64,000 bases of DNA from Saccharolobus solfataricus P2 (GTDB taxonomy: Archaea > Thermoproteota > Thermoprotei_A > Sulfolobales > Sulfolobaceae), in assembly GCF_000007005.1 (NCBI RefSeq), contig NC_002754.1; one strand, given 5' to 3'. Each line of letters starts with the position of its first letter. The stretch's first letter is position 1. Under the pieces are notes generated by a model, which was given only the letters and a program-made list of their open reading frames with translations, searched no databases and was not told where the DNA came from. Position numbers and translations under genes: made by a program. Below are positions 25,909-61,959 of the stretch, in pieces.

Positions 25909-26946
25909 ATGATTATAAAACCCGAACCATCACTTAAAGATTTATCCTATATAATTGAGAACGCAGGATTAAAGGCTAGTGATTTACTAAACATGTATAA
26001 GAGAATGCTAATTATCAGATACTTCGAAGAGTCCATAAGGAAAATTTACCATGAGGGAAAGAATCCCTTCAATATGGCATCCGGTAGAATTAGGGGAGAG
26101 ATGCACCTATCAATAGGGCAAGAGGCAGTTGCAGTTGGTACGTTATACGATATTAGAGACGAAGATGTAGTAGTGAGCACCCACAGACCCCATCATCACG
26201 CTATTGCCAAAGGCGTTGACTTAAAGGGATTGGCAGCGGAAATTTTAGGTAAAGCTACTGGACTCTGCAAAGGAAAAGGAGGGCACATGCATCTGTTCGA
26301 TAAATCTAAGAACTTTGCATGTAGCGGAATTGTAGGAGCTTCTTTTCCTCAAGCAGCTGGCGCTGCCTTTGCGTTTAAATATCTAGGAAAAGATAACGTG
26401 GCAATATCATTTGCCGGTGAAGGTGCAGCCAATCATGGTACCTTCGCTGAAACTCTAAATATAGCAAGTGCTTGGGAATTACCATTAATAATAGTTATAG
26501 AAGACAACAAATACGCTGATTCTACACCTAAATCCTTCGTTATGTCCACCACTTTCCATTATCAGAGAGGTTTAGCATATAACGTCCCATCATATCTTGT
26601 TGACGGAATGGATGTAATAGACGTCTACTCAACTTCTAAAAAAGCCATAGAGAGAGCAAGGAAAGGTTTTGGTCCCACATTAATTGAAGCTTTAACTTAT
26701 AGGTATGTAGGACATTTTGAAGGAGACGGAGAGGAATATAGAACTAAAGAGGAAGTGGAGTTCTGGAGCTCATTAGATCCTATAAGGAGATTAGAAAACA
26801 GACTATTACGTCTAAATTACGCTGACAGCGACATTCTAGCTAGACTCAGAGAGGAGGCAAGAAAGCAAGTTCAAGAGGCAATAGATTTCGCAATAAATAG
26901 TAAGTACCCAGAGCTAACTGACGCATTCGGAGGTGTCTTCGCATGA
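25909..26946 (+). CDS. pdhA: 2-oxoacid/acetoin dehydrogenase E1 alpha subunit
   Basis: HLSIGQEA, THRPHH, GEGA...N TPP motif, TYRYVGHFEGD. Confidence 0.9.
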   Translation: MIIKPEPSLKDLSYIIENAGLKASDLLNMYKRMLIIRYFEESIRKIYHEGKNPFNMASGRIRGEMHLSIGQEAVAVGTLYDIRDEDVVVSTHRPHHHAIAKGVDLKGLAAEILGKATGLCKGKGGHMHLFDKSKNFACSGIVGASFPQAAGAAFAFKYLGKDNVAISFAGEGAANHGTFAETLNIASAWELPLIIVIEDNKYADSTPKSFVMSTTFHYQRGLAYNVPSYLVDGMDVIDVYSTSKKAIERARKGFGPTLIEALTYRYVGHFEGDGEEYRTKEEVEFWSSLDPIRRLENRLLRLNYADSDILARLREEARKQVQEAIDFAINSKYPELTDAFGGVFA

Positions 26947-27941
26947 AAATAAGGGGAATCGCACAAGCCATTGCCGAGGGAATAAGACAAGAGATGGAGA
27001 GAAACGACAGAATTGTGGTACTGGGAGAAGACGTAACATATTGGGGGGCAGTCTTCGGATTTACTATGGGACTTTTTGATAAGTTTGGAAGAAAAAGGGT
27101 TATCGATACACCCATTACTGAACAAACATTTATGGGCATTAGCGTTGGCGCTGCTTCCTCTGGCTTACACCCAGTTGTTTCATTAATGTTCGTAGACTTT
27201 CTAGGTGCGGGATTCGATCAAATGTTCAACCATATGGCAAAGAATTATTACATGAGTGGAGGTCAATATCCCATGCCAATTACTGTAATTACGGCAATAG
27301 GAGGAGGTTATGGTGATTCCTCACAGCACTCACAAGTTTTATATTCACTCTTCGCCCACTTACCAGGATTTAAGGTGATAGTACCTTCAACACCATATGA
27401 CGCTAAAGGTCTTACAATTAAGGCACTAAGAGACAACAACCCAGTCATAATATTCGGACATAAACTATTAACTGGACTACCATTTTTACCATTTGAAGGG
27501 AATGAAGAAGAGGTCCCAGAAGAACCTTATGAGATCGAATTCGGCAAAGCAGCCATCAGAAAAGAAGGAACTGATCTAACCATAATTTCCGCCGGCTTAA
27601 TGGTCCATAGAAGCTTGAAGGCTGCGGAAATGCTACAGAAAGAGGGAATTTCAGCCGAAGTAATAGACGTAAGAACGTTCGTCCCGTTAGATGAAGAAAC
27701 CATAATAAAGTCAGCTAGGAAAACCGGAAGAGTGCTAATTGTAGACGAAGACTATATGAGCTATGGTGTAACTGGAGAGATAGCATTCAGAATACAGTCT
27801 AAGGCATTAAAGGATCTTAAAGTCCCCATATCCAGGCTTGCAGTTCCAGACGTTCCAATACCCTTTTCAGAGCCTTTAGAAAATGCGGTAATACCCAACG
27901 TAAATACAATCTACAGTGAAGCGAAAAAGTTAATCCAATAA
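26943..27941 (+). CDS. pdhB: 2-oxoacid/acetoin dehydrogenase E1 beta subunit
   Basis: LGEDV, DTPITE, HSQ, EVIDVRT; ATGA overlap with alpha. Confidence 0.9.
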   Translation: MKIRGIAQAIAEGIRQEMERNDRIVVLGEDVTYWGAVFGFTMGLFDKFGRKRVIDTPITEQTFMGISVGAASSGLHPVVSLMFVDFLGAGFDQMFNHMAKNYYMSGGQYPMPITVITAIGGGYGDSSQHSQVLYSLFAHLPGFKVIVPSTPYDAKGLTIKALRDNNPVIIFGHKLLTGLPFLPFEGNEEEVPEEPYEIEFGKAAIRKEGTDLTIISAGLMVHRSLKAAEMLQKEGISAEVIDVRTFVPLDEETIIKSARKTGRVLIVDEDYMSYGVTGEIAFRIQSKALKDLKVPISRLAVPDVPIPFSEPLENAVIPNVNTIYSEAKKLIQ

Positions 27942-29395: not shown

Positions 29396-30034
29396 GGGAG
29401 TGTTCTCATGCAGTCATCTTATTCAAGAAGTATTAGTAAAATTATATCAAGTTTATCTAATATACTGTACTTCCTTCAAGTAAGCCTCGTTCAAGGGAGT
29501 TCCCTCTCTTGAAAACACGCGAGGGTACATTACATTTGACAAGGCTAAACTGTACTCCGCCATTCTTATACTCCTATTAACAGCTTTAGTATCCCTAGCC
29601 AGCCTCGCCAACCTACACCAAGAATTATGACTCTCCACAAGATAAGTATACTTCTTACCCGCTACACGATTATCGAGAACTTGATAAACACAGTAGTAGT
29701 CAGTATAGTTTACCTCACTCCTAGTTAACCAACCCAAGAGATAACGAAAAGTCCCATAACTCCTATCCCCAAACTCGTAAAAAGGCACCCCATCAGCCAG
29801 GACTGTCCAAATCCACAAATCCTCCCTCATCACCCCATACACTAGTATTTTGGAAAAGTTCTTAGACTATGATCTAGTGGTATATCCTTTGCCTAAAGCT
29901 ATAAACTTTCTGAAAGCACTAACGTTCTAATCTATTGGCTGCATCTCGATTAAAACGACTAATTGTGAAAATTTCTAGTTTGATTTAATTTTACTATATA
30001 ATATTGAATAAGATAGCTGCATGAGAACACTCCC
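29396..30034 (-). mobile_element. Internally deleted IS1-family element (ISC1173-like); transposase remnant 29453-29842
   Basis: Both ends GGGAGTGTTCTCATGCAG. GDRS...YTDY...ESHNS...LARLARDTKAVNRS match the IS1 C-terminus. Confidence 0.8.
29843..29921 (+). mobile_element. SM1-type MITE (copy 3)
   Basis: 79 bp, AC/AC flanks. Confidence 0.9.
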
Positions 30035-30053
30035 AAAATAGTCATTTTGGTGG

Positions 30054-30872
30054 TTACCATTTTATAAAGTAAGTCCCATAATCTGGTTGCCACAGTTCTA
30101 ATGTAATTTTATTTCTATCTGCCGCTAACCTATGTTCGCTTTGTATCTCTACTCCCTCATGAGGCCCATCTAAGGTGACTACTAAAACTTTTTCCGCCTT
30201 CACGTTTTTTGGAACCCATGGTAGATTTATCGTAATCTTTGCATAATAGGTGGGTTGACCTATTGTGATCCCTTCCATACTGTAATTCATATTGTATCTT
30301 CTATAAAGCTCTTCCATAGTTGATGGAAAGTATTTTTCATCCCAAGTATAGAACCCGTATTTTATCAATTCCCCTACCTCTAACGGGGGATCAAATGTTA
30401 CGCGGAATTTAATGAGCTTAGGATCTACCTCTTTTTCCCACTTACCTTCACCTCTTTTATTCTCATCCAGCAGATTTTTCCTAGTTATCTTATTAAACCT
30501 TATTACTTTAGAGGCTTTTTCCGCGTTGAACCTATTGGATTGATGAATTCTTTCCTTAACCCCGTTAACTAAAGGAGTTGCTTCGAAGTTTATTCTTAGA
30601 GCTCTATCTCCTTTAGGAGAGGCACTGCATATCTTATTTATGTTAAGGAATAGGAGATATTTATCTCCTTCAGAGTATACCTTACCCTTAGTTATCGTAC
30701 CGTTCTTTAAACCTATTATATTTAGCTTACTCAGCCCATTTAGTATTCTTTCTATTTCTGTTCTATTCATTCTTATCATTATCTCGTTTATGTTAACGTC
30801 CTCATTATCAATGCCAACTTTCTTAAGTAGTGTTGCTATGAGTTTTTTTGAGGCTAAGGAAAGTTCTCCCAC
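30054..30872 (-). CDS. Putative HTH-like regulator with uncharacterised C-terminal beta domain; paralog of 41406-42197
   Basis: Helical N-terminus; C-terminal GELIKYGFYTW...PT...QPDYGTY pattern shared with the paralog. Confidence 0.65.
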   Translation of the reverse strand: MGELSLASKKLIATLLKKVGIDNEDVNINEIMIRMNRTEIERILNGLSKLNIIGLKNGTITKGKVYSEGDKYLLFLNINKICSASPKGDRALRINFEATPLVNGVKERIHQSNRFNAEKASKVIRFNKITRKNLLDENKRGEGKWEKEVDPKLIKFRVTFDPPLEVGELIKYGFYTWDEKYFPSTMEELYRRYNMNYSMEGITIGQPTYYAKITINLPWVPKNVKAEKVLVVTLDGPHEGVEIQSEHRLAADRNKITLELWQPDYGTYFIKW

Positions 30873-31079
30873 ACCTTAATATTCTTAAAGCGTGTTATAA
30901 AAGTGTTGCTAAGTCCTCTATGTTGGAAACAAAATGCGGAAGTTGAAACCAAATTAAAATTAGATTAACTATCAGTTAATATTAATATTAAGTTATAAAC
31001 AATTAAAAGGTAAATATTAAGTAAATCTATAAAATTTAATAGGAAACATTTATATTTTAAAGGATACTACTAAAGATAC

Positions 31080-31931
31080 ATGATGATGGAGAAAATAGTA
31101 ATGGTTGCTATATTGATTTTATCAATCATTTCACTGCCATTGACTATAATATATCCTCACGCTTCTTCATCTCTTCATTTAGGTCCTCAAAGAATATGCT
31201 TTAATATAACGTCAAACAATTACGTAAGTGCAGTATATAAGCCGATAATTCAAGTTTTAAACTTAAATGCTAGGCCAAACTCAACCGTTAATATAACCTT
31301 AAGTTTAACGAATTCGTCAATGCCTATGATGCTTAAAGTACCTAAGTTCAATCTATTAGGATATACTTTAGGTGGCAAACTGGTGACAATCAACGTGAAC
31401 CCTTTAGGATCTCTCTGTTACGGCATACCTGATCTATCGATTTCAACACCCGTTTTCTCGGCAGGTGTTTATATGGTTTTCAGCGGGTATATAACTGGTG
31501 TTTTGTCTTTTTCTGGAAATATTTCCAAACCATTATTAATAAGACTTACAGATGCGGGAAACTTAAGTATACCTATTAAAATTCCTCTCCATGCTTCTGG
31601 TAAAGGAATTATAACGCTATCTAATATTACCTATCATGTAGCTATAAGCCTAGTTGTTAAATATTCTTCACTGCTAAACTCTGGGAATTATACTATACTG
31701 CCTCTAAAGCCTATAGGGAACTTTAAGGGAGTCCCGTCCTATATTAATGGAATTTATGTTATTGAAAGCAATTCTTACATGACCCTTCTTATCCTTTACT
31801 TGTATATTGTGATTGCAGTCGGGATGATTATAGCTATAATTGTCAAATTTAGGAGGAAAATAATACATATTATTACATTCCTCAAGCACTTCGTGAAACT
31901 TACAAACCCATGCTTAGATAAACCAAAATAA
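31080..31931 (+). CDS. Secreted, C-terminally anchored surface protein
   Basis: Signal peptide, N-glycosylation sequons, C-terminal TM + KFRRK. Confidence 0.75.
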   Translation: MMMEKIVMVAILILSIISLPLTIIYPHASSSLHLGPQRICFNITSNNYVSAVYKPIIQVLNLNARPNSTVNITLSLTNSSMPMMLKVPKFNLLGYTLGGKLVTINVNPLGSLCYGIPDLSISTPVFSAGVYMVFSGYITGVLSFSGNISKPLLIRLTDAGNLSIPIKIPLHASGKGIITLSNITYHVAISLVVKYSSLLNSGNYTILPLKPIGNFKGVPSYINGIYVIESNSYMTLLILYLYIVIAVGMIIAIIVKFRRKIIHIITFLKHFVKLTNPCLDKPK

Positions 31932-32169
31932 TAGAACCTAACCTCAATTCAAGAGCGTAGGTATAATGAATGTAGCCTTTTTCATAATAGTTTCAAAAGG
32001 ACTAGTTTTAACTTAAGATGTTAAAAATGAGTTAGTAATAGAAACAACAAGAAATATTTTGTATTAGGGAATATCATTTTCCTTCGCGTCTATTAAGAAA
32101 AAGGCTATAATTGCTCGCACTCCTTCTTAAGCATACATATTTATATATAACTTAAAACTACTTGTTTAT

Positions 32170-34011
32170 GTGAGCTATAGGACATTACTCTCAATAATTG
32201 TGATAATATTGGTAATGATTTCTTCCTTTTCCATATTATGTATAATAATATCTAATGCAGAAATTACTATTAACAATAATATTACAGATTCAAATAATAT
32301 TTATATGGCCCCTAATTTTTTTGGTGCCGATCCCGCTATGATCTTTCCCTATAATAGTACAATGTTGGGAATTATTCTAGCAGGCGGTGGTGGTCCAGAG
32401 CTTTCTGTAAGTCAAGTATATAATTTATCGTATCCTTATAATCAAGTCATGTTTAATTATCCGGAAAATGGACCTTTAGAGTTAAATATGTCTTATGATA
32501 ATTGGTCCATTCATGAAATATCATTCATAGCTCTACCAACTGTAGATGTTTATCCTACGAAAATATATAACTCTTCACTTTATCTTGGTAAGGGACTACT
32601 CTCCGCTACCTATAAAAATATCGCTATCATAATTATTTCTTATAAAGATTTTTCCAAATATAATATAACTCTTAGTCAGTATCCTTCCCATATTCTTCAA
32701 GGAACGGATGGCATAGGTTTATTTATAATTCCGCTGCAAGCATTACCATGGGTTTATGGGAAAAGTGTTAACTCATCCGTGATCCAACAGACCTATATTT
32801 TTCAAAACGAGACAAATTTAATAATTAACGGAAATGATTTTGGGTCTTTAACTCAATTGGGTCTTTATGATGAATTATCATCAACTGTTCAAACTTTAGA
32901 GTTTTTAAACACTACTTCACCTTATTCAAGTATATTAATTGATTCGATAAATAACACTATAGAAGCTATGGCAAATCGATTTACCATTGATAACCAAACC
33001 ATTGATAATTCAATTATTGACCTGGCCTATAGTTCGTCAACATTAACTCCCGGAGAACAAGAATTTTACGCTTACATAGTGAGTTTCGGTGGCAATATTA
33101 CTACTAAAATAGAAAGTGAAATCTATTCAATTTTACCTAAATTAGTTAATTTAATACAGTATCCCAGTATCTCAAATCAATCTCCAACCACAATAGTTTC
33201 GGTGTTTAATGTTCTGAATAGATCAGCTACTAAAGTACCTGGTGTTGTATATGGATTACTTTACAATTCTACTGGATTAATTTCAAAATCTATAATGAAT
33301 TCTAATGGTGAGTTAGTATTTAATGTTTCTCCAGGTACGTACGTACTTTACGTCTACCATTATCCAAACTTAGGACTTAATTATACAGAATATTGGGGTC
33401 AAATTAGAATAGATGTCAGATCTGGTATAAATAAATATAATTTTACTAGAGTTGAGCCGTGGATTTACAATATAATCGATACATCGATAGATTCTCAATT
33501 TAAGATATCTGTGAAAATTATTAATCCATTAAATCAAACAGTTAGCGGGCAGCTATATTTATGGATAAGTAACGGAATCGCATCCTCAGCTAGCGCTCCA
33601 ACATTTGAAAGTCAGTTGCTCTTAAATCCTGGCGTAAATTCTATTAATTATACTTATACAGCCTCAAGTAGTGGTTCTTACTATGTTTACGCAGTTTTGA
33701 AATCTTTTGTTTTAAATCCTGAAGGAGAGCCAATAACCACTGATCAATATAATTGGACTAGTATGGGAGGTATAAATATAAGTAATACGCCTACTCAAAC
33801 TGTAACTACAACGTTTACGGTTACCCAAACCACTGTAAACCGGCAAACTATCACCTCTACCGTTACCCAGACAAGCGAAGGTACCACCACAGTAGTAGTG
33901 GTTAATAAATCTTTAAGTGCTGGAGCAGAGCTATTAATTATCACTATATCTATAATAATTATTGTAATTATGGGAATTATAATAATTCTGTTCCTAAGAA
34001 GATCTAAGTGA
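32170..34011 (+). CDS. Cell-surface glycoprotein with Ig-like domains, Thr-rich stalk and C-terminal TM
   Basis: Signal peptide, NGELVFNVSPGTYVL Ig-like pattern, TVTTTFTVTQTT stalk, TM + RRSK; 613 aa. Confidence 0.8.
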   Translation: MSYRTLLSIIVIILVMISSFSILCIIISNAEITINNNITDSNNIYMAPNFFGADPAMIFPYNSTMLGIILAGGGGPELSVSQVYNLSYPYNQVMFNYPENGPLELNMSYDNWSIHEISFIALPTVDVYPTKIYNSSLYLGKGLLSATYKNIAIIIISYKDFSKYNITLSQYPSHILQGTDGIGLFIIPLQALPWVYGKSVNSSVIQQTYIFQNETNLIINGNDFGSLTQLGLYDELSSTVQTLEFLNTTSPYSSILIDSINNTIEAMANRFTIDNQTIDNSIIDLAYSSSTLTPGEQEFYAYIVSFGGNITTKIESEIYSILPKLVNLIQYPSISNQSPTTIVSVFNVLNRSATKVPGVVYGLLYNSTGLISKSIMNSNGELVFNVSPGTYVLYVYHYPNLGLNYTEYWGQIRIDVRSGINKYNFTRVEPWIYNIIDTSIDSQFKISVKIINPLNQTVSGQLYLWISNGIASSASAPTFESQLLLNPGVNSINYTYTASSSGSYYVYAVLKSFVLNPEGEPITTDQYNWTSMGGINISNTPTQTVTTTFTVTQTTVNRQTITSTVTQTSEGTTTVVVVNKSLSAGAELLIITISIIIIVIMGIIIILFLRRSK

Positions 34012-34279
34012 TCTCTTAATTAATTTAATTATTGGATATGTACTAAATTTTATAAATCATTAATAATATTCTGAGAGTATAGAATTTTATCCCATATAAG
34101 ATGTGATTGGGAACTTTTCTTATTATAGTAAAAATTTCTAGTTCCATTATTAACTTATGCTGTAATTTGTATGCATACATACAGATAATTAATGTCGTAG
34201 CAATTATCATATCTTCCCTTGATAATACCAGAAACCTTGTACGTCCTAGAAAGTTTTTAACCTTCAAGTCCACTTTATG

Positions 34280-34443
34280 GGGAGATTCAGATATCCGTTG
34301 CGAATTCACTTTATTTCAAAGATTACTACGAAATTAACTAAATGAAGATGATTAACTAGCAGAGATACACGATTATCAATATTAACATTTTTACAACCGC
34401 ATTATTTACAAATTACAATTCGCAAAGGAGACTTGAGTTGCTC
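34280..34443 (+). mobile_element. ~164-bp MITE (SM4-sized), diverged
   Basis: Colinear with 28071-28234. Confidence 0.7.
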
Positions 34444-34562
34444 TAATGTTGTCATATACATCGAAATTAGTTCCAGAACAACGTTGCTTTGGAACCATTT
34501 GATATAAGATATATATAAATAGCAGATAGAGTAGAAAGAAACTAATAAGGGGATGAAAGGTA

Positions 34563-37500
34563 ATGTTAGAAGTAGTATATATAGTAGGAGCATTTGGATC
34601 ACCGTTGCTAACTCCGCCTACGTTGGCAGTAGCTGGTTTCCTTATCGCTGTGCTTATGGGTCTAGAATATGGTGTATTATGGGTTCTAACTGGAGAATCT
34701 TTAAATAGAGAACTAATATTAGTTATATCAAATATAGTTTACTCGATAGCGTGGTCTATTACTGCACTACCTTTTACTCCAATATATTATACACTTCAAC
34801 CTTATTTTTCTCAACCTCTCCTCATTTACCTTTATCTAGCACTTTTCATAGGTTCTATATTGCTTGGTGTAATCCCAGCTATAATGTATATAAGAAAATA
34901 TTTACAATTTAATAAAATACAAAAGGAATTTAAACAGTTAGAACTAGATTATAAATCCATAAATCAAGAATATAGTGAAATTAATACGAGACTTAATAAA
35001 GCTAAGGAGGAAATCAATAATGTCATGGATAAGATTAATAAAGCTAAGGAATTACATGAAACCGCACTTAGGGATCCAGACTTAATAGTTACGGCACTTG
35101 ATAAAAAACCTGAGATACCAGAGGTTATAAGACCTAATGTAAATTACGTAGTAGCAGGCTTAGGAGGTACTGGAACAGCGCTATTGGAGGCACTCATAGA
35201 TTATTTAGTTTCAAAAAACGTCATTAAGGAAGACGGGACTAATCCTTTCTTATTCGTGGCTTTTGATACGAACCAAGCAAGTATTGCGAGACTGAGGAAA
35301 AAGTATGAATATACACCAGTTGGAAAACTATTGTATACCTTTAATAACTTTGAGGCACTCACTACAGCTAATATAATAAGCCATAATCCTTGGCTTGCTG
35401 GGTTAAACGTTGATGTAATTCAAGGCTCTGGAATGAAGAGAGCTATAGGTTATGCATCTTATAATACGGTGAAGGAAGCCATGATGGAGGATATCCTCAG
35501 AAGGTTAAGTGATTTAATTGCCAAAACGAGAACTAATCGTATATTTTTAATAGTATTTACCGCTTTAGGAGGAGGTACTGGTTCTGGCTCATTCATTCAT
35601 TTTACGAAGGACTTTATAAGTAGGCTAGGTAGGATAACTGGAGATTCAGAACCTTACGTGAGAGTGTCCGGAATGTAATTATCTGAACGAATAGATAAAC
35701 AGAATGATAAATATTAATATTGCCAGAAGGGTAGGACCTGGATCACCGAGAAAAACTTATAATGGAAAAATATCAAGACGAGAGGATTTACCTATCGCGC
35801 ATAGCGTTGCCTGATCGCGAGGAGGCGCGTCTCAGAGCTGAACGGCTCTACGTCCTGGAGGAGTCCTCCGTTGGATCGCGAGGAACATCTTGATGTTGTA
35901 GATCACTCCCAGGACGTGAAGGAAGACGTCGTTCCTCCAGGTCGTGGTCCCGTAGGGCCTCCAGAACGCGTTCAGGTAGGTGCCGAAGAACTCCACGTGG
36001 GCCCTCAGGGTAGTGAAGGGCTTCTCCCGCGCTATGAGCTGTGTCGGGGAGGGAGAGAATCCCCTGTCCGCGATCTTAATCCCCTTGAGCGGTGACTTGA
36101 ACCTCTTGTCCGAGAAGTTGGCCGGCTTCACCGTGATGGACCTCACGAAGAGGGAGACGGAGATCACGGCTATGGCCTTGAGCCCGTAGTGCGAGACCCC
36201 TCTCTTCTTGGTCCACCTTCCCTCGAACCTCCTCTTGGTTCTCCCCAGGGAGAGCAGCTTCCTGGCCCTCTCCAGGTTACCTTCCCTCCTCTCCAGCTCC
36301 GCCTTCTCCCGAAAGGTCTCCACGCTCCTCTTCCCAGGAGGTAAGTCCAGTAGGAAGGAGTCCACTAGCCACGCCATGAAGTCCACGAGATGCGCGCTCG
36401 CAGGGAGGTAACTGGGTAGGCACTTCTCCTCAAGCTTGAAGGAAATCTCCAACAACTTCTTCCTCACCCCGTACAACCTGCCCACGAAGTCGTGCAGCGT
36501 GCTCTTCCCCACCTTCCTCCCCACGAACCAGGCCACGACCACGTTCACGTTAACCATTTTCACCGCGTCCCTATAGGAGCAAGAGTAGAGCACCATGACG
36601 ATTAACAACTTCAAGTAAACCAGCGCGCCCTCGCCCAGAACCCTCTCCAAATCCATGGCGTCCAGCACGGGCTTGATCTCCGTTAACCATTTTTCCCTCC
36701 ACGGCATATCCTCTATTGGGGGAAGAGGGTAGTACATCAGGTTTGGTATGTGTCTTAATGTTCTTGCCATGGTACTACCCTCTACTCCCATAACTTAAGT
36801 GTTACTCCAATTTAATCCAAGATAATGCTAAAAACCAATTTATTCTTGCCAATAAAAATTCAATTTTTTACATTCCGGACACTCTCACGTGATGGGATTC
36901 GGCGTGCTACCTAGAGGAAATGAAGGTAAATTATTTCACGTTAATGCATTTTCCGCTATAAAGGAAATGCAGTTTATACTTAAAAATGGCGTTAGATCAA
37001 AAGATGAGAAGGCAAGTAGCGGAGCAGAAAATACTATAAATCTCATTAATCCCTTCTTAGCATTTTTCATTATAAGTAGAGATAGACCCGTTAGAGATAT
37101 AGATACTAATATAGCGGTAGGTCTAGCGAGATTTATATCGGATATAGGTACTTCTGGCGTAGTTGAAGCAAATCAGCAAAGTAAATATGCTGAGACTTTC
37201 GATCTCGGAGATATTAAAACTAAAGCTGCAATGTCTCCGGATTCCTTCTTCACCTTCAACAGATATGACATTTATTTCCCTGCTTCAAGAATATCGTGGT
37301 ATAAAAACGTAGGAGTTATTGTAGTTAATGACATTAATTCTAGATATGCTAAATTAAGGGAAGAGTTAAATGAAATTTCGAGACTCTTATCTGGATACAA
37401 GGATAATATCTCGAAGTTTTTAGCGAATTTAGATAACCTTAACAATACCGTTAAATCCATGACTGTAAAGGTGTACAGAAGATGGAGCAATAGAATAGGC

Positions 37501-38907
37501 GAAACACATACTCAACTTCTAAAGTGGAGGGCGGAAGTAGTAGAAGGAGGGAGTATATCACCTAAGAACCTTGAGACTCCATTAAATAGCATGAATAGCT
37601 CTACTGAAGAAAACGTTGAGAGTATAGTAATCTTAAAGAGGAGAATAGATGAGTTCAATGAGATTGTGAAGGAAGAGGAGTCATTTTTAAAGAGTCCTCC
37701 TGCAAGCCAGATAGAGTACGTCTTTCCAGTTAGAGAACTTGAGAATTTTAACGTATCCCAGTTATCCACGGACAAAGCATCACTTTATAGACTAATCGAG
37801 GAGTATAGGAGAAAAGACGAATTCTTAAGAGCTTTAGCAGACTTAAAAGCTCCACTAGGTTCAGTAGGGCAGACAATGGCTAATATCGATTACCAGAAAA
37901 TTAACGTTCCTATACCCATAACTACCGAGGCTAAAGAATTCATTTCTAAGTACAATTCTGGCTTAATAAAGCAGAATGCAGTAGTATCCCCCGATATAGC
38001 TAGCGTATTGATGGTTACTGCATCAATGCAGGATAATATAAACGTTAATGATTTTCCTAATCCAGAAACCCTTAAACAAGCGTTAGAGAGTAAGACTCGC
38101 AATCCAGACGCTAAAATGGGCTATATCAATTCAAAAAGATTTAGTATATCCACATATCACATAATAAATGGTGTTTACATATGGAGAATATCTAAAAATA
38201 CCCCTCCTATTCTAAGGGATTTAACGTACCTCATAGAGGATTATGAGGCTGTTAAGAACGAAAACTTTGGAGAGTTAATTTACCATCATACATTGTTTTA
38301 TAATGATCCTCAGACCTTTGAAGCATTAACGGGAGAACAAATAGCCAATTTATCCCCTAATCAAGCAGCTTGGAGGATAATAGAATTTTGGGCGAACTAT
38401 AATCCAGAAATAGAATATATTAATATTTGGGGAATTATAGAATTAGCCGGCGTATATAGTGATCTTAAAATTATTAATAATAATATTGATAATTTAATGG
38501 AATTACTTGACGGAGCTATAAAGAGTTTACAAAGGGGAGTAACTAACGTAGATGTGGTTAAGGTAAAGAAATATTTAGATGCAATAACCTCGGCAAAAGT
38601 TCCATCTTCAGAAAACGTTAAGGCAATCTACGAGGCTAATAAAATAGCGAATAAAGACGAGGTGAATAGAGGTCTCAAAGAGATAGCCGATTTAAGCCTA
38701 CAAATACTCTCAAAACTGGAAGACATAAAGGTGAGATACGGTCAAAAATGGATAGATGATCTGAATAAGTTAAAGAAGGAATCCACAGATTACGGTATAA
38801 ATAGGATTATACAAACCCTTATAAATCACACTGATACGTTAATTACTAAATCAGAGAGTTTAAGTGAAGATCTCAATAAATTCGTGGAATCCATAACCTT
38901 AGAGTGA
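34563..38907 (+). pseudogene. Membrane-anchored tubulin/FtsZ-like GTPase (~1037 aa), split by an IS
   Basis: GLGGTG, AFDTN, GSGMKRAIG, ALGGGTGSG before the IS. 34563-35659 + 36891-38907 = 3114 nt, in frame (PYVMGFGVLP). Confidence 0.88.
35660..36886 (-). mobile_element. IS5-like element (ISC1234-like ends); transposase 35832-36791
   Basis: 1227 bp, perfect 19-bp TIR GAGAGTGTCCGGAATGTAA, 4-bp TSD ACGT, DDE motifs (LVDS, IADRGF, HVEF); visibly GC-richer than the host gene. Confidence 0.9.
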
Positions 38908-38913
38908 ACTAAA

Positions 38914-41409
38914 TTGTCCTCCTCATTCGATCCTGAGAGATCCCTACTAGATTTTTTCAAATCCAATAACAGCGAGCAAACGTTCTATATTTTGAAGGGA
39001 CTTTATGAAATATATAAAAGTAAAGGTTATACTGAGTTCCTTAAGGATATTACTGGTCTAATTAATTTAGTAGCGAAATATGAGACTATGCTATCCATAA
39101 GTTCTAACACTAAAGGTAATTTAAAGAAAATAAAGGATATGTTGGAGAGGTTAAATATAGACGTGAAAGAACTGGAGAGATTATCAAAAAGTATTGCCTC
39201 TGACCTCATTAATAACATAAACGATGTTTGTATTTCAATTCAAGGTTACTATAATGATAAGAAACTACCCATGGTTTTCAAATATAGCTGCCATGAAATG
39301 TTACCAGATCCTTATAATGCTGACCATAACTACCCCGCTAGGTTAAAGTATTTCTTGACAACAGTTCTTAGAATGAGGAATTCTTACGAATCAACAGTTA
39401 GATTCTCTACAGATTTAATAGATTACTATTCTAAAAAATTGGGATATGATATATCAAATATAAAGGACTTTTCCGAGAAATTAAGATTCGTAACTAACTC
39501 CCTTCTGGATCCTTCTTTCATATCAACCCTTCAAGGAATTACTAAAGTTCTGATGGATTCAACCGAGTATTTATGTGTAATATCTTATTACTTAACACCT
39601 CAAAAAATTAGAGGCAAGAAACCCTCAACAATTATAGAATACGAGCCATTAATAGATAATATTATTAAATACTCATCATACTTCCTAAGATTTATTTTCG
39701 AAAAAACTGACAGATTTCTAAATTTTATTCCATCAGCTGGCCTAAACTTAACTGAATTAAGGAATATAGCCAATCAAATGCTCGAAATACTCTCTAAAAT
39801 TAACCTAAATGTTTTAGAATCTTATCTTACAAATCAAGGAGAGTTGAAACTATCTCAAATTTATACTGGAGACCTACTATTCTTTACCTTCTTTAATTTA
39901 GCTGATGCATTAAATATTTATGATGATTACATATATAAAATCAGAAACGCAGTACTTTCCGTACCTTTAGAAAATAGGATCGCAATAACTAGAAGTATTC
40001 TCGGATTAAAAGATGTTGAGGATATTAATATGAGCTGTAGAGATGTACATAATTTTATTCTAAATATGAATGAAATCTCAAATGAAATTTATTCTGGTGG
40101 AAATATTGCAGAATTAATAGATAGTCTGCGAAAGTACGTTTTCATAAGGGATTCTATAAATTATGCTTTTAAAGATGTAGCACTATTAATGCAGAACGTA
40201 CTATACTCTAAAGAAATCACGTATTTAAGTATGTCCCTTCACGTAGAAAACTACATACATAATACCTCAGCCATAGAATTACTTGATAGAATTAGAATAG
40301 ATTATAATGATTATAACCGATTAATTAATAATTTACATGAGTTTAGGGACTGGATTAACGTACTCAAAAAGCTCGATTTAGATCAAAAGTTGTCTGAATC
40401 TCTAGTCAAGGTAGTGAGCGGGGATCCTCCAACTAATAGTAAAATGAGTTTGGATGAAGTAATAGGAAAGATAATTAAGAGAGAACAAGCTAACGTTGAG
40501 GAAGTTAAAGGAACTGGAATATACGAATTTAGAACAGACAATAGGGTAATAAGAGCCATGCCCGTTATATACGATATGTGGAAGGAAATAGGAGATGACG
40601 GGATAGAATATTCCCATTTAGTAAATTGGTTAAGTAAGAGATTAGATATTGATGATGATAGAAAAGTTAATGAGATAGCAATAAAATACTTAAATGCGTC
40701 ATATTATGCAGGGTTAATAAAACTTGAAGAAAAACCGACAACTAAGCCTCCAGATACTGAACAAACTCGTAAAAGAGAAATCACGATTAACGCAATAGGT
40801 ATCCCTACTGGAGCAAGATGGAAATTCATACTCGCACGGGAAAATAAATATCTTAATTTCGATACAAACGAAAGTTCGATAAGGATTAAAGCGCAAGAAA
40901 AAGATAATCTAACTTTCTATGATGTTACGATAGGCAATGTTATATATGTACCCTATCCTAGGACGTATACCATTAGATCTAGTGATTTATCAAAAGGCGT
41001 GTTAGACGTAAAATATAATGTATCTTCCCCTCAATCAAGTCAAAGGACTGGAAAAACTAATGTGCAAACTAATGTAAAGATTTCCAAACCCAAGGGAACT
41101 GCAACCGCAGGTGTTATATTATCAATAGTATATATTATCGAACTAATAGTAATTGCAAGTGGATTCCAATACTCTAACATTCTATTTGAAGCATTAACAG
41201 TAATGGACATATTCTTTCAGTTAGCAATAATGGGATTACTAGTATCCGCTGTAACTAACCCCTATAACTCCCATAAAAAAGGTTCATATATTATCATAAT
41301 ATCGATAATAATGTTCTTCTTTTCAATCCCCATAATAGAATATGTGATATTCTTCATTATATTTGATATTGCAGTTGGAATTTCATTAGCAAGATTTAAA
41401 CGTAGGTGA
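38914..41409 (+). CDS. Large helical protein with Ig-like segment and ~3 C-terminal TM helices
   Basis: 831 aa; starts 6 bp after the tubulin-like gene; GIPTGARW Ig-like motif; hydrophobic C-terminus. Confidence 0.8.
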   Translation: MSSSFDPERSLLDFFKSNNSEQTFYILKGLYEIYKSKGYTEFLKDITGLINLVAKYETMLSISSNTKGNLKKIKDMLERLNIDVKELERLSKSIASDLINNINDVCISIQGYYNDKKLPMVFKYSCHEMLPDPYNADHNYPARLKYFLTTVLRMRNSYESTVRFSTDLIDYYSKKLGYDISNIKDFSEKLRFVTNSLLDPSFISTLQGITKVLMDSTEYLCVISYYLTPQKIRGKKPSTIIEYEPLIDNIIKYSSYFLRFIFEKTDRFLNFIPSAGLNLTELRNIANQMLEILSKINLNVLESYLTNQGELKLSQIYTGDLLFFTFFNLADALNIYDDYIYKIRNAVLSVPLENRIAITRSILGLKDVEDINMSCRDVHNFILNMNEISNEIYSGGNIAELIDSLRKYVFIRDSINYAFKDVALLMQNVLYSKEITYLSMSLHVENYIHNTSAIELLDRIRIDYNDYNRLINNLHEFRDWINVLKKLDLDQKLSESLVKVVSGDPPTNSKMSLDEVIGKIIKREQANVEEVKGTGIYEFRTDNRVIRAMPVIYDMWKEIGDDGIEYSHLVNWLSKRLDIDDDRKVNEIAIKYLNASYYAGLIKLEEKPTTKPPDTEQTRKREITINAIGIPTGARWKFILARENKYLNFDTNESSIRIKAQEKDNLTFYDVTIGNVIYVPYPRTYTIRSSDLSKGVLDVKYNVSSPQSSQRTGKTNVQTNVKISKPKGTATAGVILSIVYIIELIVIASGFQYSNILFEALTVMDIFFQLAIMGLLVSAVTNPYNSHKKGSYIIIISIIMFFFSIPIIEYVIFFIIFDIAVGISLARFKRR

Positions 41410-42197
41410 TAGGTATGGAAAAGAAAAACTCAATAAATATATCATTATTAGAAAATTTAGCAAATTTTTTCTCCATAGGGGAAATAGAAAAGGGAGAACT
41501 AAGAGCAAATTCAGAAATAATTAATTATCTTTTAGAACAAGGTCTAATAAGACAAATAGAGAGAAATTTTATAGTAGATGAACTGCTCAAATTTATTATA
41601 TTAAAATATAGTAATATAGTAAAATTAAAAATGTCTAAAGACTATTTAGTGAAGACTCAATCAATATATATACTCTTAATGATAGTAGACGAGAATTATC
41701 ATAAAATACCTTTTTACGACTATATTGCGTATAGCGGACTGGTTAAGATAAAAAAGAAGAGAATTGCAAGGAGTGTAATAAGAAATGGTAAAAAGATCAT
41801 CAATAATAATCAAGGCGAAATACATTTAATGAAATATCAAAAAAATAAAATAAAGGCTGAGATTAACCTAGATCAAACGAAGTCTGGAGAGATAATTGAA
41901 TTCGGCTTATATATATGGAATAGGCCATCTAAGCTAAGTTTAATGGGAGATAAGACCTTTAGCCAAAACTATTTCTGGATATACGCTCCTACCTTAGAAT
42001 ACTCCACCAAAATACTTCTCGAAAATAATCTAAATGTAGAATCGATAAACCTAGAAAGGTTCTTATATCTAGATGACAACCATCAAATTAAGGCACCAAT
42101 TAAAAATCAATATATGCTCAGAAAAGAAAAAAATTATATTGAGATAAAAGTGCATTATCCTGATTATGGTATATATAAACTATCGTACAATTTATAA
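41406..42197 (+). CDS. Putative HTH-like regulator, paralog of 30054-30872
   Basis: GEIIEFGLYIW...PT...YPDYGIY; overlaps the upstream stop (GTGA). Confidence 0.7.
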   Translation: MIGMEKKNSINISLLENLANFFSIGEIEKGELRANSEIINYLLEQGLIRQIERNFIVDELLKFIILKYSNIVKLKMSKDYLVKTQSIYILLMIVDENYHKIPFYDYIAYSGLVKIKKKRIARSVIRNGKKIINNNQGEIHLMKYQKNKIKAEINLDQTKSGEIIEFGLYIWNRPSKLSLMGDKTFSQNYFWIYAPTLEYSTKILLENNLNVESINLERFLYLDDNHQIKAPIKNQYMLRKEKNYIEIKVHYPDYGIYKLSYNL

Positions 42198-42219
42198 ATT
42201 GTTAACTAGGTATTTATCT

Positions 42220-42536
42220 TAACGGGGGTTAAGGGGGCGGAAGACCCTTTCCGTGAGGGATGGATAGCCCCCTTATATAAAAGTTTTTTAACTAATCTAA
42301 ATCATATATTTTTTAATGATAGTTACCAATGGAGTGAGCGTCACCGAGACGTCTTGGTTAAAGCGAGGGTCGATGTGGTACGCCTCTGCTCCGGACAGTA
42401 GCCCCAAAGGGGTAACAGTGTCATGGTTAATGAGTTTCGTTCGGGGTCGGAACGACCCTTAGTGTGGAGCTCCGCCCTCTACCGCTGGCAAGGTGGGGGT
42501 ATGAAGCAGGAAGCCTTGTAGGGCAGGGTAGTTCAC
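42220..42536 (+). mobile_element. tnpB-less IS200/IS605 MITE/PATE (~315 bp) with left end and omegaRNA-type right end
   Basis: Left end CGGGGGTTAAGGGGGCGG. Right ~100 bp match the ISC1316 3' end and finish GGGTAGTTCAC. No ORF. Exact left boundary uncertain by a few bp. Confidence 0.85.
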
Positions 42537-42560
42537 TATACGAAAATCGTATCGATTGTT

Positions 42561-42890
42561 TGGGGTGTTCTAATGCATCCATCTTATTCGATAATAAATA
42601 ATAAAATTATATCAGATTAGAAATTTTCACAATTAGTCGTTCCGAATCCAGATGCAGCCAAAGGAATTAGAACGTGAAAACAGCCTCTGAAAAAGGTTTA
42701 TGTGCAAGGATTACGAAATCTTTTTGTAGTAGTACTTGAATGGATCTCGCGAACTCTTGCACATAAGTTTTTCTAAAATAATGTCTTTGTTCAAATTTCT
42801 ATATCTTAAACGTTAAACGAGCGTTTTTCATATTACTCCAATATTTTTACAAATGTTTTTTGAATTTCATGACTGTTTGAGAACACTCCC
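42561..42890 (-). mobile_element. 330-bp MITE, second copy, followed by an extra terminal repeat (to 42948)
   Basis: Diverged reverse complement of 17504-17833. Confidence 0.85.
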
Positions 42891-43213
42891 AACTTGATAT
42901 AATTTTACAAATAATTTTAGAATTTCATGATTGCATGAGAACACTCCCAATTCAAAGAAATCCAATTTTATTTATATCATCAGATACATATAATTAAATT
43001 TTAGACTATATTAAAAACAGAGTAAATTTTCTTATATTTGAAGAAACAATATGATAATCCTAGCTGAATTTATATTTGTAAGACGATTTTGGATCTACTG
43101 AGAAGGGGCGAGGCTTGTCTTTTCTGTGTCAAAAGAGTTTGAAACTGAAGTAGAAAGTCGTATCTTAAGTACTCGAGTTAAGTTTAAAGTCATGCTATAC
43201 ACTTTTTAATACT

Positions 43214-43995
43214 GTGATTTATACTTTACAATTCCAACTGAAAATCTCGAATGACGTAATTGTCCCCCTTTCACATCTAAACTCAGTAGGACCTTGTTCC
43301 TCTCCTTCTCCCCAACTTACTCAAAGATCACTGAAAGCAAGGAACCACACAAACCCTTAAGAATAACCGTAATAAAAGATCACGGCAAACCCTTATATTC
43401 CACGGGTAAAAATAAAATAGTGCTAAAGACTGAAAACACATACACATTTACCGTAAATACCCTATTAGAGGATGTGGTAAAGGAAGTGGTAAAGACCGAG
43501 AGTGTCAATAAGGAAATTTACAATACGAAATTTCACGTTGAGCTGGAAAACATTATAGTCAAAGAGGAGTTTAAGATTAATGATGCCAGATTCTACAAAA
43601 TTCACTTTAAGACCCCAACACTCCTACAACCCCCGAGACCTAGTATCAAAAGAAAAGGCAATAGATACGTCTTGTTCCCTTACGTTCCACTCCTCTTTTA
43701 CTCCATAGCCTCCCATTGGAATAGATACATGAATAACAAGATAGTTGGAGTAACTGGTAGCAAAACCCTATATTATTTTAGAGAAGTAAATTACAAGATA
43801 AGGCCTCTAACCGCATATTATGGGAACATACCTAATAAGGGATTTGTGGGATGGGTTTTATTTGAGTTAAAAGCTAGGAAGGGAAGCAATTTAAGGGAAA
43901 ACATCAGAAGGCTCTTAGATTACGCAAATTACTTCGGTATAGGAAAAAGCAGAAATATAGGTTTTGGAGAAGTAGATGTAAGACCTTTGGAATAA
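43214..43995 (+). pseudogene. cas6: Cas6 endoribonuclease with a -1 frameshift in a C5 run near 43264-43268
   Basis: G-rich loop [14 protein letters not shown]-terminus (GTG 43214) [18 protein letters not shown] joins PFTSKLSRT only if one C is added. Confidence 0.85.
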
Positions 43996-44114
43996 TATTA
44001 AAGATATCTTATTTGATTTCTTAAAGATCTATCATGCTGAATTATTACAGAATAGGTAACTTAATTTGATTAAATTAATGCATATACGTTTATCATTAGT
44101 TTTCCTCCAATTTT

Positions 44115-44268
44115 GGGTGATTCAAGGATCCTTGCGATTTCAATTTGTTTCTCTAAAAACAGATAAGAATAATTGATTCGACATTTTCGATAATACTAAT
44201 AAGAGACGAGGGAATGTTCTCATGCAGTCATCTTATTCGAGAAGTGTTAGTGAAAATATATCTGATTA
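44115..44268. mobile_element. Fragments of an SM4-sized MITE end and an ISC1173-type end
   Basis: GGGTGATTCAAGGATCC... followed by GGGAATGTTCTCATGCAGTCATCTTATTC. Confidence 0.6.
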
Positions 44269-44314
44269 GAGGTTTTTATAACTAGCTGGAATTTCCAGAC
44301 CTCCTAACTCCGAG

Positions 44315-45461
44315 TAGCACTTTACGGTTTTCTCCTCCTCTTGAACAGTTTTTTGATCCCACCCGCCTCACGGTAAATACTTTTTATCAATCTGGCCAAC
44401 CTTTTGGCCCCGAGTCTCAGACCCGTGGAGTACTTGAAGTATTGGACAACGAGGAGGGAAAGAGCCTTCAAGGCCACGAAGCCTGAGTTCCTAACCCAGG
44501 TCAAGAAGGACCCACCCTCGAGTCCCAAGGCCTTGAGCTCCCTAATCAAGACCTCGATGTCCCAACGGTTCTCCCAGGTCGTTATAATATCTTCAGCCGT
44601 GTCGTTAAGGTCGGTGGAGAAGAAATACCTCCTCCCGTAACCCTTATAGTCATCTATAACAAGTAACTTTATGGGAGTACCCAAGTACTCTACCAGGTAC
44701 TCCCCTTGGGGGAACTCGCCAACGGGCACGGATCTGCCACCCTCGACAACTCGCGCACTGGACTTGAGTTCCCCCATAGTATTCCCTTGGAGAGTCCTCG
44801 AGTTCACGTACCACGAGTCGAAGACCTTGGATTTCACATTCAAACCTGAGAGGGAGGACAGAAACTCCAAGAGGGCATCTATCTTGGTCTTGAACTTCAC
44901 CTCCTCACCCCTACGCTTGAGCTCCTCTTCCACCTTTCGGGGTATGTAGGCAATTATGTGGATCACGTAGATCTGGTTGTTCACCAGATCCTTGACGCCA
45001 ATCACAAGGAGCTGGATCGCGGACTCGAACCTCTTGTGCGCCCTACAGTAGAAGATCTGTGCTCCGTTTCTGGAGACCGGCATGGCCCTAGCGTAGAGCT
45101 TGTGGTCGTGGGTGTCGTCTATTATGAGAAGGACAGGATGATCCCCGACTAACTTCTTCACGATCTCGATTAGTTTGGCTTGAGCTGCCTTGTCCAAGTT
45201 ATTCAGTACGGTCTCGTAGTCCATCTCGGCCTCTTGAGCTATCTCGGTAGCATTTCTTCCCACAACCGCCCCCAAGAGTAGCCTCTTGGCAACGTCCTTC
45301 CTCGTTCCAGTCATGGATAGTATGACCTCGTTAACTGCCTTTTCCAATGCCTTGTAGTATTCCTCTCTCGTCAATTCTTCGGTCATACCAAAATTAAAGG
45401 CTCTAATTTTAAAAAGTTTTTATGGGCCTCTTGAACTGCCAGGATTTTCCGATAAATGCTA
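44315..45461 (-). mobile_element. ISC1217-like element; 354-aa transposase 44322-45386
   Basis: 1147 bp, imperfect 13-bp TIR TAGCA(C/T)TT..CGG, 6-bp TSD TCCGAG, IIDDT / FDSWY / RWDIE. Confidence 0.92.
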
Positions 45462-45836
45462 TCCGAGTATTGCCAGAACGTTAGGAATGACTAAAAGCCT
45501 CGAAATGTCTTCTACTTCTCTCTTAATATAAACTCATTGACAACTTTTGCTTCTACCAATTCCTTCTGGTCTGCACTATTCTTTTAGCTTCTTCAACATT
45601 CACATGCGGAGTAGACTCCACAAATATATTTTAAACTTTGTGGAATACACTCCACTAATCCGATGAGTTTGTACCTACCTCGCAAGTTGTCCGAATTGAG
45701 TAAAAACCCAAATAGTAAAGTTTATGGGAACCCAGAGACAAGGTTAATTGAAACCTTTTTTAACGATGATTCTGACAAAAGGTGAAACAAAGCTGATATT
45801 AAATAAAGATTTAAGGTCAGACAAAGAGGTCATATT

Positions 45837-46370
45837 ATGGAGTCGCAGTTACCTAAATTCTTAAAGGAACCGGAGAAGTACTCTAGGTTGAGATTACTTG
45901 AGGCTCTGCAAGAGCTCTATTTAAGCATTGAAATGCTCAAAGAAGGCTATAGCAGGAACTCCGCAAGTAAATTATTCCTCTCATGGAAGGCGCTTTTAAG
46001 TTCAATCGTTGTTACAAATTTTGGCAAAATAATGGAAACGAAGAAGAAAGAAGGGAAGGAAGACGAGATAAAGTGGTACATGAGAATAGGATATTCTGCA
46101 CCTACTACTGGTCTAATAGGGATTGCAAGAGACCTTGAGAATCTCGGATTTAAAGGGTTAGTTAATCTAACAACCGCAATGCTGGGGATTCACAGATACG
46201 CATATAACGGTTTAGATGAGGATATAAGTCCTTTTCACAGTAGGAGTGAAGCAATAATATCAATAAAGGGGTTAATAAAAGCTGAAGTTGAAATAGTAGG
46301 CTCAATGAAATTTGGGGATGAAGAGAAAGAGCTCTTTGAGAAAATAAAGAGGGAATTGAACAACATCTGA
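45837..46370 (+). CDS. PaREP1 family (HEPN-like) protein
   Basis: LEALQEL...EGYSRNSASKLFLSWKAL, IHRYAYNG; 177 aa. Confidence 0.8.
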   Translation: MESQLPKFLKEPEKYSRLRLLEALQELYLSIEMLKEGYSRNSASKLFLSWKALLSSIVVTNFGKIMETKKKEGKEDEIKWYMRIGYSAPTTGLIGIARDLENLGFKGLVNLTTAMLGIHRYAYNGLDEDISPFHSRSEAIISIKGLIKAEVEIVGSMKFGDEEKELFEKIKRELNNI

Positions 46371-53761: not shown

Positions 53762-54901
<1,140 letters not shown>

Positions 54902-61400: not shown

Positions 61401-61959
61401 TTGAAACTGACCCGTATATCCGAATTTACGATTAATCCCAAAAGGAATTGAAAGGTATTATTCTCATAATAGGAACCGCCCTAGTGTATGCTAGATTAAT
61501 CCCAAAAGGAATTGAAAGCGTGATTACATGGAACATTACTTTTCCACCGAATATTGATTAATCCCAAAAGGAATTGAAAGTTTATGTTTTCGAGTTCTTC
61601 TGGTCTTAACATCACTCTAGATTAATCCCAAAAGGAATTGAAAGGTCAGTTATACGCTACATATGAAAAGATAAATGAAGGATTAATCCCAAAAGGAATT
61701 GAAAGATCTCTCTTAGTTTTGTCAAAGCTTCTGACCCGCTCCTGATTAATCCCAAAAGGAATTGAAAGTCTATCTTTATTGTTACAACTTTTGCATACGA
61801 CATAATTTGATTAATCCCAAAAGGAATTGAAAGTCCTCTATCATCTCCTTTAAGCACTGTGTAATCTCACTTGATTAATCCCAAAAGGAATTGAAAGTAA
61901 TACTGCAGTAACGGTACAAGTCATTGACAGCGCTGATTAATCCCAAAAGGAATTGAAAG
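55466..61959 (+). CRISPR. CRISPR array: 103 repeats of GATTAATCCCAAAAGGAATTGAAAG (25 bp), 102 spacers
   Basis: Counted by hand; first repeat 55466, last 61935-61959; no degenerate repeat noticed. Confidence 0.99.

Follow-up and report, generated by a model that had tools for sequence, protein, structure and literature searches.

We report that a 64,000-nt stretch of the Saccharolobus solfataricus P2 chromosome (NC_002754.1, assembly GCF_000007005.1; hereafter the window) carries a gene, split by a single insertion sequence (IS), that almost certainly encodes a membrane-anchored and very divergent FtsZl1/Tubulin_2 member of the tubulin/FtsZ superfamily. The best overall explanation, which we consider likely, is that this is a recently IS-inactivated gene of the SSO1376 type whose intact product would assemble as a GTPase. 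The gene is not new: its FtsZl1 identity, its fusion to a transmembrane (TM) region and its disruption were published for SSO1376 in 2010 (Makarova & Koonin, 2010, Biol Direct 5:33, PMC2875224), and NCBI already names the orthologues tubulin-like, so the original prediction for this locus erred in presenting the gene as hidden.

The two open reading frames (ORFs) at 34563-35678 (371 aa) and 36889-38907 (672 aa), both on the plus strand, are halves of one gene, and the segment that separates them, 35660-36886, is the IS. Joining the flanks through one ACGT restores a continuous reading frame, RITGDSEPYVMGFGVLPRG, in which ...RITGDSEPYV is followed directly by MGFGVLPRG.... The uninterrupted form exists in nature. 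At the DNA level, two intact alleles, L041 (contig CAZWOP010000055.1 of GCA_964635305.1, a metagenome-assembled genome, MAG) and L044 (a S. shibatae-type locus), lack the 1227-bp element at the orthologous site and read GAACCTTACGTG(A/C)TGGGATTC, with a single ACGT. Across the junction, the L041-encoded protein P0002 reads ...SEPYVMGFGVLPR..., and the corresponding DNA, GAACCTTACGTGATGGGATTC, equals the window flanks plus one ACGT. The empty site is thus proven by the intact alleles. Codon 366 is the site of insertion and falls, within the GTPase domain, between helix H4 and strand S5; the tubulin-like gene of this strain is a pseudogene. The expectation that two in-frame pieces of a gene of ~1037 codons flank a single IS was borne out by the flank join, by the empty sites and by an intact orthologue, P0157, of exactly that length.

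As predicted, the terminal inverted repeats of the IS are perfect. They are 19 nt long, with GAGAGTGTCCGGAATGTAA at the left end and its exact reverse complement at the right, and this end sequence has exactly two matches in the window compared with 0.02 expected by chance; with the flanking ACGT included, the repeat reaches 23 nt. The predicted clean target-site duplication was confirmed in part: ACGT is present on both sides of the element, but, being a palindrome that runs on into the inverted repeat, it would look the same with a formal duplication of 4, 2 or 0 bp. The minus strand of the IS carries a 319-aa ORF with weak similarity to IS5/DUF772 transposases. We regard the element as putatively IS5-like, a weak assignment since the scores for both Pfam DUF772 (22.2 bits, cut-off 23.1) and NCBIfam IS5_4 (E 0.002, 17.5 bits, cut-off 140) fall below the cut-offs. 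A search of the PLSDB plasmids with the IS gave no match, and the literature on ISC1225 yielded no sequence features to compare with the 1227-bp element. The IS has a GC content of 52.5%, against 35.1% in the interrupted gene; so high a value is unusual in this host and may reflect a donor lineage of higher GC. We also noted that 400-nt windows inside the element reach 60% GC, in a genome of ~36% GC.

Using the C-terminal ORF as a query, we recovered the same protein in Saccharolobus solfataricus as well as full-length relatives of 1013-1057 aa. The intact orthologues are 1013-1060 aa in length, all carry a precomputed PF13809 assignment, and their NCBI name is 'tubulin-like domain-containing protein'. 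P0002 (1035 aa) is 87% identical to the N-terminal and 79% identical to the C-terminal ORF, and P0003, P0004, P0005 and P0007 are also intact. P0157, whose locus is L044, is found in S. shibatae and Saccharolobus MAGs (27 contigs), belongs to the 90%-identity cluster of the window pieces and has the 1037 aa predicted for the fused window gene. Neither half in the window contains a stop or frameshift, and each can be aligned with the intact relatives over its full length. Relative to L044, the N half is 93.2% identical with a ratio of nonsynonymous to synonymous substitution rates (dN/dS) of 0.10, and the C half is 91.5% identical with a dN/dS of 0.18; the values for the neighbouring genes described below are 0.24 for the downstream partner gene, 0.19 for the 263-aa gene and 0.24 for the upstream 613-aa gene. 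With L041 as the outgroup, unique amino-acid changes number 8 in the window versus 15 in L044 for the N half and 18 versus 25 for the C half. Given the lack of excess change on the window lineage, we see no trace of neutral decay, and the insertion appears young. These comparisons indicate purifying selection on the gene until the insertion and a recent inactivation, in agreement with the original prediction and contrary to the outcome named beforehand as refuting it: intact alleles exist, and dN/dS against the closest of them is far below 1.

We give next to no credence to the alternative that the two ORFs are what is left of a gene long in decay and that the tubulin motifs are chance resemblances or relics in every strain. 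One could cite in its favor that the S. solfataricus strains on record, like S. caldissimus, have the gene in broken form, that the part following the transposon was described in 2010 as 'partly disrupted and poorly alignable' (PMC2875224), and that the dN/dS of the C half reaches 0.81 when L041 is the comparison. Such decay is ruled out, however, by open halves that can be aligned over their whole length and by the low dN/dS against L044, and intact orthologues with a conserved operon are found in several archaeal orders.

The S. caldissimus orthologue (L047, AP025226.1) has its own, independent interruption at L047:5151-5994, which falls in the stalk helix near codon 152. Here an element of ~830 bp and 38% GC is bounded by 17-nt terminal inverted repeats (GAGTGTGGACAACAATT) and accompanied by an 8-bp duplication (AGATCAAG). 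At the same locus, an IS1-type transposase lies in the interval that separates the upstream surface-protein gene from the start of the tubulin-like gene.

Family and structure were examined using the window pieces together with natural intact relatives, and the structure model is that of P0002 rather than of the broken window gene. The N half matched Pfam Tubulin_2 (PF13809) at 36.9 bits, above the gathering cut-off of 27, which bears out the proposed FtsZl1/Tubulin_2 membership. PF00091 scored 30.4 bits on the same half, below its cut-off of 33, and Pfam gave no FtsZ_C match in the window gene. In hhalign, the family profile matched the canonical FtsZ encoded at L042 with 92% probability, confined to T1-H5, and the best sequence matches in the PDB were CetZ proteins (4b46, 4b45 and 3zid), around T4-T5. 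The five motifs named in the original prediction are all present and conserved in the family, and their assignments hold: in full-length numbering, GLGGTG at 199-204 (T1), FDTN at 234-237 (T2), GSGMKRAIG at 288-296 (T3), GGGTGSG at 336-342 (T4) and TFDLGD at 468-473 (the T7-like DxxD). Conservation was counted over 37 family members. Invariant positions are G201 and G204 of the T1 loop, R293 of the T3 region, G338 and G340 of T4, and N384 and E391 (each 37/37), and G199 of T1 as well as T339 and S341 of T4 are found in 36 of the 37. D235 of T2 is retained in 35/37, and the T7-like aspartates D469 and D472 in 32 and 31 members, respectively.

An AlphaFold2 model of intact P0002, built from the 37-sequence alignment, had a pLDDT of 89.9 and a pTM of 0.78. 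About four TM helices are modeled at the N-terminus (aa 18-111), matching hydrophobic segments at aa ~14-111 of the window gene and the TM anchor that had been predicted, and the last of them continues into a stalk helix of ~87 residues (84-170). A Rossmann-type domain follows (194-428), then two helices (436-453 and 470-479) joined by a loop that contains TFDLSD, and a strand (485-493). Beyond this point are a helical hairpin (helices 496-632) and an alpha/beta piece, which together span 496-~725, three strands (734-743, 767-776 and 783-791) and a helical bundle (808-1031). When the model was compared with the PDB by Foldseek, the top 50 matches were all CetZ, TubZ, FtsZ or tubulin (probability 1.00), led by CetZ1 (4b46; E 5e-8, TMt 0.69) and followed by TubZ (4ei7) and CetZ (3zid), with TMt values of 0.58-0.70 for S. 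aureus FtsZ, consistent with the tubulin fold that had been anticipated. The FtsZ and CetZ alignments extend over ~620 query columns for targets of ~305 residues (TMt 0.65-0.70), as against ~335 columns for tubulins. These spans and the order of secondary-structure elements suggest that an FtsZ-type C-terminal domain is present but split by a coiled-coil and alpha/beta insert of ~230 aa, and the protein is predicted to end in a terminal helical bundle of ~230 aa. The ~500 aa after T7 had been described as a helical domain; this fits the bundle at the end but not the coiled-coil hairpin and alpha/beta part that precede it. The model matches the FtsZl1 architecture of an FtsZ-like domain, a long coiled coil and a helical C-domain, and profile positions 196-1034 match family members of ~850-900 aa that lack TM helices. 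A BFVD search gave phage FtsZ and tubulin matches and no archaeal-virus counterpart with this architecture.

The occurrence of the gene is sparse and patchy, with 7 word-level matches in 5.8 billion proteins and 45 profile matches at E<=1e-30, and it is absent from most Sulfolobales. TM-anchored members were detected in Saccharolobus/Sulfolobus, Acidilobus, Thermoplasmata and a 'Thermogutta' contig that is probably mis-binned, and relatives without TM helices in Methanoperedens and ANME-2 (L010 and L011) and others. In a phylogenetic tree, the TM-anchored proteins form one clade (UFboot/SH-aLRT 99/97), nested in a branch with 100/100 support, apart from most TM-less archaeal members.

In Saccharolobus/Sulfolobus, the TM-anchored FtsZl1 gene belongs to a conserved module of three to four genes (Table 1). 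The partner gene starts 7 nt past the stop codon of the tubulin-like gene, co-oriented and tightly packed. Its product is predicted (AlphaFold2 pLDDT 78) to begin with an all-alpha N-region, to continue with a small alpha/beta part and a beta-sandwich, and to have three C-terminal TM helices. Pfam, NCBIfam and PDB-sequence searches with the partner gave no match, a Foldseek search against the PDB gave nothing at E<0.01, and a homologue search gave four close relatives. A homologue lies directly downstream of the tubulin-like gene in L041, L001, L044-47 and L006, and in L003, L007 and L042 the similarity is faint or the gene is replaced. The third gene overlaps the partner stop by 4 nt; its 263-aa product has no family or PDB match and is 39% identical to L001:5838-6629, and orthologues of 260-264 aa follow the partner in L001 and L044-47. 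Upstream, a 613-aa protein has an N-terminal hydrophobic segment, many N-x-S/T sites, a C-terminal TM anchor and no Pfam family above the cut-off. Orthologues of 607 aa (L044-L046) or 625 aa (L047) are encoded directly 5´ of the tubulin-like gene, and the L044 orthologue is 86.8% identical. We consider this surface-type gene a possible fourth member of the module. Neither Rfam nor tRNA scans (34000-43400 and 30000-46000) detected anything.

Table 1. Coordinates of the split FtsZl1/Tubulin_2 gene, the interrupting element and the module genes in the window.
Feature	Positions	Strand	Basis or content
Upstream gene, 613 aa	32170-34011	+	ORF and translation; surface-glycoprotein-like
5´ part of FtsZl1/Tubulin_2 gene, codons 1-365 + 2 nt	34563-35659	+	PF13809, hydrophobic segments, motifs
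T1	35157-35174	+	Motif in 5´ part
T2	35262-35273	+	Motif in 5´ part
T3	35424-35450	+	Motif in 5´ part
T4	35568-35588	+	Motif in 5´ part
Left ACGT copy (target-site duplication; length formally ambiguous)	35656-35659	unstranded	Flank comparison with intact alleles
Insertion sequence, 1227 bp	35660-36886	-	Terminal inverted repeats 35660-35678 and 36868-36886
IS transposase ORF, 319 aa, putatively IS5-like	35832-36791	-	DUF772 and IS5_4, below cut-offs
Right ACGT copy	36887-36890	unstranded	Flank sequence
3´ part of gene, full-length codons ~367-1037	36891-38907	+	S5/T5/H5, H7, T7-like, H8, insert, C-domain remainder, bundle (as modeled)
T7-like TFDLGD	37195-37212	+	Within 3´ part
Partner gene, 831 aa	38914-41409	+	Homologues downstream of intact alleles
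Third gene, 263 aa, soluble	41406-42197	+	Orthologues follow partner in L001, L044-47

Several features were observed around the module. Between the 263-aa gene and cas6, GC content rises to 46% over a short patch (42200-42600), and 1.9 copies of a 58-nt tandem repeat occupy 42841-42950. Downstream of the tubulin-like operon are genes for Cas6 (43294-43995), a 1031-aa nSTAND3 NTPase (50221-53316) and a Csx1 CARF-HEPN protein (53762-54895, minus strand), all located between the operon and a CRISPR array with the repeat GATTAATCCCAAAAGGAATTGAAAG that occupies 56991-61580 and probably extends further. A PaREP1-family ORF is at 45837-46370. The region is IS-rich, with further transposase ORFs at 44322-45386 and 48116-48862 (both minus strand; IS701/IS4-like and IS110-like) and about 50% GC around 44200-45000. 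Genes for E1 dehydrogenase alpha and beta are upstream of the module in the window (25909-27941) and downstream of it in S. shibatae-type loci (L044:20563-22548), and the left flanks of L044, L045 and L046 differ from one another; the module thus resides in a rearranging region. In a Thermoplasmata MAG (contig_46361, L042:15253-16386), the TM-anchored FtsZl1 gene and a 411-aa downstream gene are ~2 kb from a canonical ftsZ, whose product carries both PF00091 and FtsZ_C (PF12327), and ~20 small unannotated minus-strand genes are found upstream.

Given this setting, the four-part module (surface protein, TM-anchored GTPase, partner and small protein) could be read as a conflict or defense system, in which GTP-dependent assembly at the membrane would be set off by infection and would either damage the membrane or block virus entry or egress. 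The window neighbors Cas6, STAND NTPase, Csx1 and the CRISPR array fit such a role, as do VapBC, HEPN/nucleotidyltransferase pairs and CsaX-Cas6 next to intact alleles and HEPN and PIN genes near L003. The very sparse, patchy distribution, the independent mobile-element knockouts in two Saccharolobus species, the fast-evolving partner and the near-ubiquity of relatives on Borg extrachromosomal elements point in the same direction. However, PADLOC models returned coiled-coil noise only (e.g. LmuB and JetC at E>1e-5), no effector domain is recognizable, and the Thermoplasmata relative two genes from canonical ftsZ lies outside a defense context. Moreover, left flanks vary between loci, and in IS-rich genomes with a rearranged region both the adjacency to CRISPR and toxin-antitoxin genes and the IS disruptions may be incidental. 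We consider a defense function unlikely.

For the intact protein, we propose that the GTPase domain would be on the cytoplasmic face of the membrane, because the number of TM helices is even, a basic segment follows TM4 (MYIRKYLQFNK) and the domain needs GTP. The protein would bind GTP and associate head to tail, with the T7 aspartates completing the active site of the next subunit, as in FtsZ and tubulin; all characterized tubulin/FtsZ proteins polymerize (PMC2875224). The resulting membrane-bound oligomers or filaments, together with the partner, would organize or deform the membrane. This role would be accessory and distinct from cell division, since most Sulfolobales lack the gene, two species carry it in broken form, and division in this order is of the Cdv/ESCRT-III type (PMC2875224). 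By analogy with characterized relatives, the protein is probably a membrane-tethered, self-associating GTPase. The polymerizing scaffold itself we put forward tentatively, and it could quite easily prove wrong. The roles suggested in the original prediction, namely membrane remodeling, cell contact or antiviral defense, are plausible, and the data do not single out one of the three.

Several points weigh against this reading of the gene and its product. GTP hydrolysis and polymerization of FtsZl1 proteins are assumptions, and the large insert and terminal bundle seen in the model could block the canonical protofilament interface, a doubt that Makarova and Koonin voiced for FtsZl1 (PMC2875224). 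The equivalence of H7/T7 and of the C-domain rests on secondary-structure order, motif similarity and Foldseek spans. The usual FtsZl1 companion, a vWA protein, was not found in the neighborhood, so that inferences drawn from FtsZl1 gene context may not transfer to this locus. Finally, dN/dS against L041 is high, 0.40 for the N half and 0.81 for the C half. The intact partner gives 0.71 in the same comparison, and the 3´ end of the L041 partner (900 aa) reads differently; dS between L041 and the window is 0.14-0.17, lower than for the S. shibatae-type allele, with a much higher dN. The high values could be due to fast evolution, relaxed constraint or MAG noise.

The doubt about protofilaments would be accommodated if the protein were a membrane-tethered GTPase switch or tether that does not polymerize, with GTP driving dimerization only, and that takes part in forming or fusing vesicles or in contacts with the product of the upstream surface-protein gene. 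A TM anchor, stalk, GTPase and helical bundles make up the parts list of anchored fusion GTPases (the logic of atlastin or mitofusin), the C-domain insert might preclude canonical protofilaments, Makarova and Koonin weighed non-filament options, and a conserved surface glycoprotein gene is located upstream. We nevertheless regard this possibility as very unlikely: the characterized tubulin/FtsZ proteins all polymerize (PMC2875224), the conserved T7-like DxxD would matter only in a head-to-tail contact, and the data give no indication of a fusion or vesicle activity. Plasmid segregation of the TubZ type was also considered and is unlikely for a protein with a polytopic TM anchor whose gene lies on the chromosome in an operon with genes for membrane proteins. 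A broader idea, which builds on the polymerizing tubulin fold, is that the TM-anchored clade with its private partner, small protein and surface glycoprotein constitutes a self-contained GTP-driven membrane machine, either antiviral (or otherwise concerned with conflict) or an organizer of vesicles or the cell surface; we find this doubtful.

Within the tubulin/FtsZ superfamily, FtsZl1/Tubulin_2 is the branch that is understood least, and to our knowledge no member has been studied experimentally. The core finding repeats a published one and does not represent a new kind of system. What is added to the 2010 account are the intact alleles, an undamaged C half, the conserved T7-like loop, the TM-anchored clade, the 3-4-gene module and the independent disruption in S. 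caldissimus. The retention of a T7-like DxxD bears on the question, raised in 2010, of whether GTP hydrolysis is activated through head-to-tail contact. Intact natural alleles are present in cultivable, genetically tractable relatives of S. solfataricus, and S. solfataricus and S. caldissimus, with their naturally IS-disrupted genes, offer ready-made null backgrounds for complementation. If there is indeed a GTP-driven membrane machine in archaea that divide by ESCRT-III, it could be tested with the S. shibatae alleles and would provide a first functional handle on FtsZl1.

Among known systems, CetZ (4b46, 4b45 and 3zid) is the best match in both sequence and structure and has in common with the window protein the GTPase domain, GGGTGSG and the LP..EG of the T5 region. 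However, identity is only ~10%, the sequence match is confined to T4-H5, and CetZ is without the TM anchor, stalk, coiled-coil insert and terminal bundle; the window protein is not a member of the CetZ family. With FtsZ it shares T1-T5 and a putative T7-H8 motif of the FtsZ type (D-x-x-D followed by I/V-R/K-T). Unlike FtsZ, it scores below the PF00091 cut-off, has no FtsZ_C match and is dispensable, given that the gene is broken in two species. Tubulin/FtsZ-like proteins of Borgs, Methanoperedens and Halobacteria, in which the start and end match CetZ 4b45 with a long coiled coil between them (bioRxiv 10.1101/2024.11.05.622173), have the same split architecture, but they lack the N-terminal TM anchor and are outside the TM-anchored clade. 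Later papers record FtsZL1 proteins in two Sulfolobales and regard the proteins of the Tubulin_2 group as a divergent outgroup. FtsZl1 operons typically, though not obligatorily, pair the gene with one for a vWA protein, a kinase or a P-loop GTPase (PMC2875224). No Pfam match to these partners was obtained among the neighbors in the window, L001, L003 and L041-47, where the private membrane partner and the 263-aa protein are found instead. The closest comparison is with SSO1376 itself, the FtsZl1 member of S. solfataricus, which was reported to be broken by a transposon immediately behind its GTP-binding loop, an event judged recent, and to be alone among archaeal FtsZl1 proteins in its fusion to a TM region, with T6-H7 not identifiable in FtsZl1 (PMC2875224). 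The window gene is the same gene. Its C half can now be fully aligned with intact relatives, its conserved DxxD loop is predicted to sit between the core helix and H8, and the TM-anchored forms constitute a clade separate from other FtsZl1 proteins.

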